Assembly (NCBI RefSeq): GCF_039654945.1
Contig: NW_027361814.1
Location: forward strand, 11,222,001 to 11,286,000
Length of the DNA: 64,000 bases
Reading direction: 5' to 3'
Source: Dendrobates tinctorius
Taxonomy: Eukaryota
Shown here: one piece after another, positions 43,781 to 52,527 of the stretch
Layout of the letters: each line of letters begins with the position of its first letter
Position numbering within the stretch: position 1 is the stretch's first letter
Program-made: the position numbers and the translations under genes
Notes under the pieces: generated by a model
Database searches by the model: none
Told to the model about the DNA's origin: nothing
The model's input: the letters and a program-made list of their open reading frames with translations, nothing else

Positions 43781-43937
43781 ATGGGGATGTTCAACTGCGA
43801 CAGTGGGGACGAAAAGATGAACTCCGCTCCGAAACATCTTCATACACCTTTCTCCATTGTGGACATCTTGAGTCAAGCCAAGGACAAGAAACCAAGGGAG
43901 AGTTCTGAAGAGAGTAAGACAGGGGATGAGGATGCAG
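43781..43937 (+). CDS. NKX1-2: NK1-family homeobox gene (NKX1-2-like) exon 1
   Basis: First ATG after in-frame TAG (43772); MGMFNCDSGDEKMNSAPKHLHTPFSIVDILSQ... contains the eh1 motif FSIVDIL; G|GTGAG donor in phase 1 matches exon 2. The true start could be a downstream ATG and orthology is uncertain. Confidence 0.75.
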
Positions 43938-44704
43938 GTGAGAGGAGGTGGAGAAGATGATGATCTTCTCCTGTATCTTCAGGGGGGGGGGTTCAGATTT
44001 TTGGTATAATTTTATTCACTTTTAAAAGTTTTTGTAGCTTTTTTCATATGGCCATATGATATGTTCAGGTGTATAGATCCATATCAAATGCACCGTAAAC
44101 AATGAGGGTTTTTTTTCTGGGGTTTCGGTGATTTTTTTGGAGTGTCAAAACATCACATTATCCGGTAGGCGTTTTTTTTGAGCGGAAACTCTTTAAATCT
44201 CAAAACTCCTCATAAACTTGGGGGTTTCATCTCAGTTTCTGCTCCAAAAACTCTGCTAAAAAACTCACGTGTGCACATAACTGGCTACTCCACAACAAAT
44301 GAGAAATTCAACAAAAAAAAAACTAATGTAACCAAAAAATAAAAGTAAAAATCACCAGTCAAAGTCGGTATTTTTTAAAAGGGTTAAATAACTTGTTGAT
44401 CACAAACTTTTGTAAAACTTTTGACAGTTTTAAACCTGGTGGTGCTGGGACTTTTAGATTCTCAATAGTGAGAGAGAGACAAAGGTTAACTATTTGACCA
44501 TTTCATTTAAAATACATATATATATATACCGTATATGACTTTCATAATGAGTTTCCTGATAACTGGTTACATTTATCCTTCTGACTTTACTATAGGTGAA
44601 GAAAAATTGGGATAGTAATCAACAAAATTGCAAATGTTTCAGATCTGATTCCAGTTTATTATTGGTCACTAGTTAGAATTTTTCAGTTTCGAGCAAAGCA
44701 AACG

Positions 44705-47700
44705 ATGTCTGTATGGGGGGATATCATTCCGCTGTGTCTGTATGGGGGGATATCATTCCGCTGTGTCTGTATGGGGGGATATCATTCCGCTATGTCTGTA
44801 TGGGGGATATCATTCCGCTATGTCTGTATGGGGGGATATCATTCCGATATGTCTGTATGGGGGATAACATTCTGCTATGTCTGTATGGGGGATATCATAC
44901 CGCTATGTCTGTATGGGGGATATCATTCCGCTGTGTCTGTATGGGGGGATATCATTCCGCTATGTCTGTATGGGGGATATCATTCCGCTATGTCTGTATG
45001 GAGATTATCATTCCGCTATGTCTGTATGGGGGGTATCATTCCGCTATGTCTGTATGGGGGATATCATTCCGCTATGTCTGTATGGGGGGATAACATTCCG
45101 CTGTGTCTGTATGGGGGGGATATCATTCTGCTATGTCTGTATGGGGGGATATCATTCCGCTATGTCTGTATGGGGGATATCATTCCGCTATGTCTGTATG
45201 GGGGATATCATTCCGCTATGTCTGTATGGGGGATATCATTCCGCTATGTCTGTATGGGGGGATATCATTCCGCTATGTATGGGGGATATCATTCCGCTAT
45301 GTCTGTATGGGGGATATCATTCCGCTATGTCTGTATGGGGGGATATCATTCCGCTGTGTCTGTATGGGGGATATCATTCCGCTATGTCTGTATGGGGGAT
45401 ATCATTCCGCTATGTCTGTATGGGGGGATATCATTCCGATATGTCTGTATGGGGGATAACATTCTGCTATGTCTGTATGGGGGATATCATACCGCTATGT
45501 CTGTATGGGGGATATCATTCCGCTATGTCTGTATGGGGGATATCATTCAGCTATGTCTGTATGGGGGGATATCATTCCGCTATGTCTGTATGGGGGATAT
45601 CATTCAGCTATGTCTGTATGGGGGGATATCATTCCGCTATGTCTGTATGGGGGATAACATTCTGCTATGTCTGTATGGGGGATATACCGCTATGTCTGTA
45701 TGGGGGATATCATTCCGCTGTGTCTGTATGGGGGATAACATTCCGCTATGTCTGTATTGGGGATATCATTCTGCTATGTCTGTATGGGGGATATCATTCC
45801 GCTATGTCTGTATGGGGGATATCATTCCGCTATGTCTGTATGGGGGGATATCATTCCGCTGTGTCTGTATGGGGGATATCATTCCGCTATGTCTGTATGG
45901 GGGATATCATTCCGCTATGTCTGTATGGGGGGATATCATTCCGATATGTCTGTATGGGGGATAACATTCTGCTATGTCTGTATGGGGGATATCATACCGC
46001 TATGTCTGTATGGGGGATATCATTCCGCTGTGTCTGTATGGGGGGATATCATTCCGCTATGTCTGTATGGGGGGATATCATTCCGCTATGTCTGTATGGG
46101 GGATAACATTCTGCTATGTCTGTATGGGGGATATACCGCTATGTCTGTATGGGGGATATCATTCCGCTGTGTCTGTATGGGGGATAACATTCCGCTATGT
46201 CTGTATTGGGGATATCATTCTGCTATGTCTGTATGGGGGATATCATTCCGCTATGTCTGTATGGGGGATATCATTCCGCTATGTCTGTATGGGGGGATAT
46301 CATTCCGCTATGTCTGTATGGGGGGATATCATTCCGCTATGTCTGTATGGGGGATATCATACTGCTATGTCTGTATGGGGGGTATCATACCGCTATGTAT
46401 GGGGGATATCATTCCGCTATGTCTGTATGGGGGATATCATTCCGCTATGTCTGTATGGGGGGATATCATTCCGCTATGTCTGTATGGGGGATAACATTCT
46501 GCTATGTCTGTATGGGGGATATCATACCGCTATGTCTGTATAGGGGATATCATTCCGCTGTGTCTGTATGGGGGATGTCATTCTGCTATGTCTGTATGGG
46601 GGATATCATTCCGCTATGTCTGTATGGGGGGATATCATACCGCTATGTCTGTATGGGGGGATATCATTCCGCTATGTCTGTATGGGGGATAACATTCTGC
46701 TATGTCTGTATGGGGGATATCATCGCTATGTCTGTATGGGGGATATCATTCCGCTATGTCTGTATGGGGGGGATATCATTCTGCTATGTCTGTATTGGGG
46801 ATATCATTCCGCTATGTCTGTATGGGGGATATCATTCCGCTATGTCTGTATGGGGGGATATCATTCCGCTGTGTCTGTATGGGGGATATCATTCCGCTAT
46901 GTCTGTATGGGGGATATCATTCCGCTATGTCTGTATGGGGGGATATCATTCCGATATGTCTGTATGGGGGATAACATTCTGCTATGTCTGTATGGGGGAT
47001 ATCATACCGCTATGTCTGTATGGGGGATATCATTCCGCTGTGTCTGTATGGGGGGATATCATTCCGCTATGTCTGTATGGGGGATATCATTCAGCTATGT
47101 CTGTATGGGGGGATATCATTCCGCTATGTCTGTATGGGGGATAACATTCTGCTATGTCTGTATGGGGGATATACCGCTATGTCTGTATGGGGGATATCAT
47201 TCCGCTGTGTCTGTATGGGGGATAACATTCCGCTATGTCTGTATTGGGGATATCATTCTGCTATGTCTGTATGGGGGATATCATTCCGCTATGTCTGTAT
47301 GGGGGGATATCATTCCGCTGTGTCTGTATGGGGGGATATCATTCCGCTATGTCTGTATGGGGGATATCATACTGCTATGTCTGTATGGGGGGTATCATAC
47401 CGCTATGTCTGTATGGGGGATATCATTCCGCTATGTCTGTATGGGGGGATATCATTCCGCTATGTCTGTATGGGGGATATCATTCCGCTATGTCTGTATG
47501 GGGGATATCATTCCGCTATGTCTGTATGGGGGATATCATTCTGCTATGTCTGTATGGGGGATATCATTCCGCTATGTCTGTATGGGGGATATCATTCCGC
47601 TATGTCTGTATGGGGGGATATCATTCCGCTATGTCTGTATGGGGGGATATCATTCCGCTATGTCTGTATGGGGGATATCATACTGCTATGTCTGTATGGG

Positions 47701-51036: not shown

Positions 51037-51332
51037 AGGAGTTGTCTGGCCTTAAGTACAATGTGACTGCAGACTTGTGAAGCTTCACAGCGCACGCAAT
51101 TCTTCAGCACTGCGAGTCTGACTGCGAGTATGTGATTTGCATGCGTGCGATCACATGCCGACTAGACGTGCCCGGCCTCGCTCCGGATAAGTCTAGTCGG
51201 AATGTGGCCGGAAGTATGCAAACCGGTCTCAAGACCACACACACCACAGTGAACACGATGTGAGGGTTCACAAGTCTACAGATACATTGAGCGACTGCAG
51301 ACTAGTAGTCTAAGGCCGGACAACCCCATTAA
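51037..51332. mobile_element. T2/Kolobok-type MITE
   Basis: aggagttgtctggcctta / taaggccggacaacccca-ttaa; same family as the 16465 and 26551 copies. Confidence 0.7.
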
Positions 51333-51952
51333 GGGAGCTGTAAGGTCCTGTTTACATTTTTTACACTCTTTTAACCATCACCTCACGAAAGATCTCTATG
51401 GGTGAGTTTAGCATGTACATTTAGAGCTAAATGTAGGCAGAAAATGTGATGAGACCATAGCCTGAGATGTCTTTATAGGGTTCAGTTTTCTTTGTCCATA
51501 GATCCATTTTGGCATTATGTACCGTGCAATAAATAACTAATTTGCTGCTGACAGTATACAGCGCAGCAATAGGAGTGCTGCGTCCAGGAGGGCCACCTTG
51601 TGGTTGTAATTGTGTGCTGCATGGGAGAAATGTTAGTACTGAAATCCAAATATTACCATTTAATGCACCGAACCTCAGCCGCATATAGTTTGGCAGTGGT
51701 CTTAATTTTTACAATAGCCTTCATTTTGTGAAATTACACCCCTTGCATTTTTATAGGATCAGAAAGATCTATAGAATATATATGGTATTCCTACAGCAGT
51801 AGCCTTCTGGCACACATTTATGCTTTTACTATGCTTTATACACATTCTTACTGTTGTGAGCTGTCTTGGAGGAACTGTTGTGCTTCTGTCATTTCCAGTT
51901 TATGAATCATACTTATGGTTGTCCTTTTTTTTTTGGTTCTTACAAACGACAG

Positions 51953-52527
51953 ATGAGAACGTCCCCTCTGTGGACATTGCTGCCGGAGTTGGAAATGATG
52001 TCGGATCATCTACTTCCCATAGAATAAAGGAACTGGATGAAGGAGATTCAGTAGATAGGGAGGATCAGAAAGACCGCAGACCTCCGGTGGCCAGTTCTAA
52101 GCCCAGGCGGGCACGTACTGCCTTTACTTATGAACAACTGGTGGCACTAGAGAGCCGCTTCCGCAGCAGCCGCTACCTGTCGGTGTGTGAGAGGTTAAGT
52201 CTGGCATTGACCCTTCACTTAACAGAGACCCAAGTCAAGATCTGGTTCCAGAATAGAAGAACTAAGTGGAAGAAGCAGCAACCGCCGGGAAGTTCGGAGG
52301 GCAGAGGATGTGGCACTCACAATTGTTCAAGTCCTGGTCAACAGTTTCTTCCACCACTCCCAGCCTTCTCCTGCCCTGTGCAGCTTCCATCCAGTACAAA
52401 CCACCATTTACCTCCATTCCCAAGACTTTTCTTCTCTCCTTCCTCCAACAATCTGCCGCTTGCACCAACATGCCCACTTCCCCAGCTTGTACATTCGGTT
52501 GGCCTCGTATCTTTCTATGGCCGCTAG
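51953..52527 (+). CDS. NKX1-2: NK1-family homeobox gene (NKX1-2-like) exon 2 with homeodomain
   Basis: Polypyrimidine tract and AG at 51951-52; [59 protein letters not shown]; spliced CDS 732 nt = 243 aa; divergent from LHPP as NKX1-2 is in human. Confidence 0.85.

Follow-up and report, generated by a model that had tools for sequence, protein, structure and literature searches.

Besides NKX1-2 (Sax1), vertebrates carry one other NK1 gene, NKX1-1 (Sax2), which belongs to the same homeobox class and has other chromosomal neighbours, LHPP not being among them. In the mouse, the order of the genes around NKX1-2 is Oat, Nkx1-2, Lhpp, Fam53b (gene table in PMC8621576), and Nkx1-2 marks the axial progenitors of the trunk and tail (PMC6198475). 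A passage of a further paper, citing Tamashiro et al. 2012, ascribes to Nkx1.2 a repressor function and a Groucho-binding domain (PMC4098999). Here we describe an NK1-type homeobox gene found at 43781–52527 of a 64,000-nucleotide stretch of the Dendrobates tinctorius genome (contig NW_027361814.1, positions 11,222,001 to 11,286,000 of the forward strand), hereafter the window, which the original prediction had regarded as an unusually divergent gene and possibly an undescribed NK1 paralogue. On the evidence presented below, it is with high confidence the frog orthologue of NKX1-2, apparently in single copy, intact, spliced and divergently transcribed from LHPP, because its protein identity, a homeodomain shared among frogs, the synteny, the intron phase, purifying selection and transcript-like contigs that skip the intron all point to this reading.

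The gene consists of two coding exons, 43781–43937 and 51953–52527, and their splicing gives a 732-nucleotide (nt) frame of 243 codons followed by TAG. Its parts are the following:

43781–43937, plus strand: exon 1 of NKX1-2, coding part (residues 1–52 and the first base of codon 53), with the ATG at 43781 and a GT donor at 43938
43850–43870, plus strand: eh1 motif (Groucho/TLE-binding type) FSIVDIL, residues 24–30, read off the translation
43938–51952, plus strand: single intron of 8015 nt, phase 1, with GT...AG boundaries (AG at 51951–51952)
51953–52527, plus strand: exon 2 of NKX1-2, coding part including the TAG stop, with 100% identity to the protein P0001 over exon 2
52099–52278, plus strand: homeobox, encoding the 60-residue homeodomain, residues 102–161 (P0001:102–161; tblastn coordinates; Pfam PF00046)
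52528–53120, plus strand: 3' untranslated region, minimum extent, as contigs of four sequencing runs continue unbroken from exon 2 to 53040–53120

An AATAAA is present at 53135–53140, 3' of exon 2. The original prediction, an intact two-exon gene of 243 amino acids (aa) with an eh1 motif and an NK1-type homeodomain, had the exon borders correct to the base. A word-based search with the exon-2 protein as the query led to the 243-aa protein P0001, whose full sequence equals the spliced translation and which NCBI names [quoted passage not shown]. The gene is thus the already annotated NKX1-2 of this species, an NK1-class homeobox protein. Exon 2 matches the Pfam homeodomain model PF00046 with an E value of 3.3e-22 and 78.5 bits, against a cut-off of 22.9. 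Among the top 120 matches, all the named proteins are NKX1-2 or of NK1 type, with the exception of a few with generic names ("hypothetical" or "homeobox domain"), and the unnamed ones are fish or invertebrate NK1 proteins. After P0001, the matches continue with NKX1-2 proteins from about twenty further frogs that range from Ascaphus and the pipids to ranoids and hyloids. The frog proteins are all short, most of them having 232–255 aa, while typical full-length NKX1-2 proteins from outside the frogs have about 270–290 aa, so the shortness remarked upon earlier is real. The eh1 motif is also present in the full-length frog and other vertebrate NKX1-2 proteins compared.

Seven of the 60 homeodomain positions depart from the domain common to the NKX1-2 of rodent, snake, gar and carp (N19S, K20R, A23S, T24S, N34S, S38T and S40H, numbered from the K of KPRRART). 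The residue directly after the domain is also altered, from N to Q, and with it the earlier count of about eight differences is borne out against this canonical domain. All seven changes are conservative and affect helices 1 and 2 and the loops that connect them, and none of them falls in the N-terminal arm or in the recognition helix (helix 3). The latter, which the original prediction had described as untouched, is identical to the canonical one, and both it and the helix-2 motif YLSVCERL are identical in the vertebrate and invertebrate NK1 proteins compared. The earlier statement that NK1 homeodomains are nearly invariant was right in part and too strong, given that the positions changed here also vary elsewhere, and given the differences from the canonical domain that were counted in the platypus (7), a nematode NK1 (8), other invertebrate NK1 proteins (2–5) and Amia (3). 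In the platypus protein (P0108), the 7 of 60 differences fall partly at the sites changed in frogs (S19, S24 and S34), and in this species the NKX1-2 homeodomain seems to have diverged independently of the frogs.

The D. tinctorius homeodomain (P0001:102–161) was then taken as the reference for a comparison with 19 other frog NKX1-2 proteins, which gave the following numbers of differences:

0 differences: seven frogs, including Xenopus tropicalis, one X. laevis copy, Rhinophrynus, Bufo, Hyla and Nanorana
1 difference: ten frogs, including Ascaphus
2 differences: Mixophyes
6 differences: Leptodactylus

That is, 17 of the 19 frog domains are identical to that of D. tinctorius or differ from it at a single position. 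As judged from these sequences, the "unusual" homeodomain is a frog-wide trait and no property of this gene copy. Of the two observations that together were to make the gene an ordinary frog orthologue, the first, that Xenopus and the other frogs carry the same substitutions, holds in full, and the second, that no other NK1 gene lies nearby, holds as far as the sequence reached. The idea of an undescribed paralogue or tandem duplicate is thus not supported. The protein of Leptodactylus fuscus (P0010) has six changes relative to all the other frogs, including T44N at the start of the recognition helix, and is either a genuine exception among frogs or the product of a faulty annotation or assembly.

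The frog proteins deposited at NCBI (X. laevis, X. tropicalis, Bufo gargarizans, Hyla sarda, Ascaphus truei and others; P0002–P0021) share with the D. tinctorius protein, in addition to the homeodomain, the eh1 motif, the N-terminal MGM start, the length class, the arrangement in two exons with a phase-1 intron and, where it is visible, the LHPP neighbour. They are unlike it outside the homeodomain, where identity ranges from 50 to 86%; in both dendrobatoids the C-terminal FY motif ends two residues sooner, and the intron of D. tinctorius is enlarged by a 5-kb minisatellite. Compared with the NKX1-2 of amniotes, the coelacanth and fish (Sax1; in fish, nkx1.2la), the likeness extends to the eh1, an aromatic motif at the C terminus, the place beside LHPP, an NK1 homeodomain in which the N-terminal arm and the recognition helix are identical and, in the hawk, the intron phase. 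The frog protein differs from these in lacking the basic KRRR before the domain and the PGAD after it, in being about 30–60 residues shorter, and in the conservative changes of helices 1 and 2 and the loops.

The position of the gene is also that expected of NKX1-2. Three exons of LHPP were recognized on the opposite strand:

14650–14799, minus strand: LHPP internal exon, matching residues 108–157 of 2x4d_A (phmmer against the Protein Data Bank chain 2x4d_A, E value 1.2e-17)
16164–16361, minus strand: LHPP internal exon, matching residues 42–107 of 2x4d_A (phmmer against the same chain, E value 7.4e-22)
32461–32580, minus strand: LHPP exon 1, with its start codon at 32580, 11.2 kb from the NKX1-2 ATG (tblastn, 90% identity in Anomaloglossus and 75% in Ascaphus)

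NKX1-2 and LHPP are arranged head-to-head (divergently), with 11.2 kb between their start codons, and the head-to-head layout recurs in the hawk Accipiter and in the frogs Anomaloglossus and Ascaphus, where in each case the neighbour is a gene of the LHPP type, encoding a HAD-family protein of 265–270 aa. In all five frogs examined, a phase-1 intron upstream of the homeobox separates two coding exons, and the first coding exon has 157–163 nt in the four other frogs as well. The NKX1-2 of Accipiter has the same intron phase, and an Asp codon is likewise split. The intron is shortest in Ascaphus (4.6 kb) and longest in Anomaloglossus (22.4 kb; L002 10158–32544), while the sizes of the coding exons are kept.

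In a maximum-likelihood tree of 39 NK1 proteins (231 columns), in which NKX1-1 is represented at most by a fish "lb" fragment, the frogs form one clade (support 100/100), with an inner branching that agrees with frog phylogeny. Frogs and amniotes together form a clade (100/99) within the jawed-vertebrate NKX1-2 proteins. The stem branch of the frogs is very long, at 1.75 changes per column against a median of 0.4 for the end branches. A word search with the bichir protein, aimed at NKX1-2 of salamanders, caecilians and lungfish and at NKX1-1, returned only fish, sharks and the coelacanth.

The length of this stem, together with a homeodomain 7 of 60 positions off the canonical one and the remodelled flanks, is what might be expected of a hidden paralogue, that is, a divergent tandem copy beside LHPP, with the canonical NKX1-2 either nearer to OAT or lost; in addition, the inspection covered no more than 11.5 kb beyond the right end of the gene. 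However, the gene occupies the exact ancestral place and orientation beside LHPP, as in the bird, and with the same intron phase; the frog clade is nested inside the tetrapod NKX1-2 proteins; and all the frog proteins found are of one type, under the plain NCBI name NKX1-2, including the two of X. laevis, which we take to be the L and S copies. When the whole protein and the homeodomain were searched by tblastn against the six frames of the 64-kb window, only the gene itself was returned, and the 11.5 kb to its right hold transposon-type frames only. Likewise, no second homeobox was found in loci of 26–43 kb, including 10 kb downstream, of X. laevis, Anomaloglossus, Bufo and Ascaphus, each of which has one. 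A hidden paralogue is therefore very improbable. What had been proposed as an undescribed paralogue is the annotated NKX1-2, with the same substitutions in the 19 frogs, LHPP as its neighbour and, as far as the sequence reached, no second NK1 gene nearby.

Pairwise ratios of nonsynonymous to synonymous substitution rates (dN/dS) among the five frogs were 0.15–0.29 for the whole coding sequence, 0–0.03 for the homeodomain and 0.22–0.38 for the remainder. The homeodomain is under strong purifying selection and has been almost frozen since the frog stem. The second option of the original prediction, a fast-evolving orthologue, holds for an ancient, lineage-wide episode, seen in the long frog stem, and fails for the time since, with homeodomain dN/dS <=0.03. 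A separate possibility is an orthologue whose evolution has become unusually rapid, under relaxed or positive selection, in D. tinctorius or the poison frogs. In its favor, when the changes were polarised with Bufo, D. tinctorius showed 19 lineage-specific residue changes against 8 in Anomaloglossus, with omega roughly 0.46 versus 0.12 (branch estimates from pairwise values), and in the alignment the C-terminal motif is two residues shorter in both dendrobatoids. Nevertheless, all 19 changes lie outside the homeodomain, where every frog varies, the homeodomain is unchanged relative to Bufo, Hyla and Xenopus, the pairwise dN/dS bearing on the question is at most 0.26, and the traits that first drew attention to the gene are frog-wide rather than specific to the species. 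We consider such a speed-up unlikely, and read the excess of changes in D. tinctorius as a mild acceleration, in regions variable in every frog.

Contigs of four small runs from three studies, none of them on record as RNA, were aligned to 50300–54600. From organism B, a contig of 1205 nt corresponds to 51953–53120 without a mismatch, and 37 extra letters at its start depart from the adjacent intron; a contig of a second run of organism B starts exactly at 51953. In organism A, which is about 3% divergent, contigs of 2594 and 267 nt match from 51951 onward and carry 1468 and 28 unmatched letters, respectively. As exon 1 likewise ends in AG, a match two bases longer is to be expected there. None of the four runs covered the last 500 nt of the intron. 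The pattern is that of a transcript spliced at the predicted acceptor and extending through at least about 590 nt of 3' untranslated region. Using exon 1 and the sequence upstream of it to search the runs, those holding exon 2 were not among the matches listed, and one run of the same study had about one third of the words. This absence, and the lack of any listed run recorded as RNA, are what a silent or decaying copy, with an intact-looking frame and no expression, would lead one to expect. Such a copy is, all the same, extremely improbable, the least probable of the alternatives weighed here, given the intact frame, the canonical splice sites, the strong purifying selection on the homeodomain, and contigs of four runs and three studies that span exon 2 and about 590 nt beyond it, end at the acceptor and avoid the intron.

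Some points weigh against the reading of the gene as a single-copy, spliced NKX1-2 orthologue. In the tree, the frog clade pairs with the platypus (88/87), a pairing that joins two long branches and is probably an artefact of them, not to be trusted. The tree is also without a confirmed NKX1-1 sequence. The surplus of residue changes in D. tinctorius counts on the same side. Moreover, the scaffold from the gene to OAT lies beyond the window, and a more distant second copy in D. tinctorius, improbable as it is, would fall outside the sequence examined. As for the transcript, the acceptor is the side of the splice that the contigs display, the donor side being a prediction, and the runs carry coded entries for tissue and library type.

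Several repeats were noticed in the window. One of them occupies most of the NKX1-2 intron:

44705–49764, plus strand: 28-bp minisatellite of about 180 copies with 91% matches, making up 63% of the NKX1-2 intron (Tandem Repeats Finder score 8331)

This array yields long spurious frames in three plus-strand frames. In the region of the LHPP gene, a G+C-rich minisatellite of 31 bp, with about 62 copies and 97% matches, extends over 2025–3930, and a 30-bp array with about 12 copies comes after it at 4278–4606; the 31-bp minisatellite also yields spurious frames, of 660–690 aa. Two minus-strand stretches resemble retrotransposons, with long frames that are integrase-, reverse-transcriptase- and gag-like: one, at 17197–21568, is inside an LHPP intron, and the other, at 59786–63895, is 7 kb downstream of NKX1-2. 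An uninterrupted frame of 471 aa is present at 40493–41908, 1.9 kb upstream of the NKX1-2 start codon, and a run of 132 N bases at 36539–36670.

By analogy with mouse and chick Nkx1-2, the protein would bind DNA through its NK1 homeodomain, whose contact regions are unchanged, and would recruit Groucho/TLE co-repressors through the N-terminal eh1 motif, acting as a transcriptional repressor in the posterior axial (neuromesodermal) progenitors. Because the eh1 motif and all the DNA-contact regions are kept, the same mode of action is most likely here. The sequence agrees with the suggestion, made from the letters of the gene, that it would encode an eh1 repressor whose DNA-contact residues are unchanged; altered surfaces for partner proteins, also part of that suggestion, are possible and would lie on helices 1 and 2.

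Taken over the whole group, the seven residues and the short, remodelled flanks appear to predate the last common ancestor of living frogs and to have been conserved since. This burst of change would have comprised the seven surface replacements in helices 1 and 2, the loss of the basic stretch and of PGAD beside the domain, and the shortening of the protein. It would date from the frog stem or from the amphibian stem. No paper on the divergence of amphibian NKX1-2 was found in our literature searches.

With the false lead of a new NK1 paralogue settled, and only the annotated frog NKX1-2 in its place, the point of wider interest is a remodelled NKX1-2 that is common to all frogs and frozen since their common ancestor. 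Burst and stasis together make a modest observation at the level of the lineage, not a trait of this locus. NKX1-2 marks the progenitors that build the trunk and tail, a region strongly modified in frogs, and a single burst followed by near-total stasis may, as a tentative idea that we think rather unlikely, mark a change of partner tied to the reworked posterior axis of frogs, and not neutral drift.

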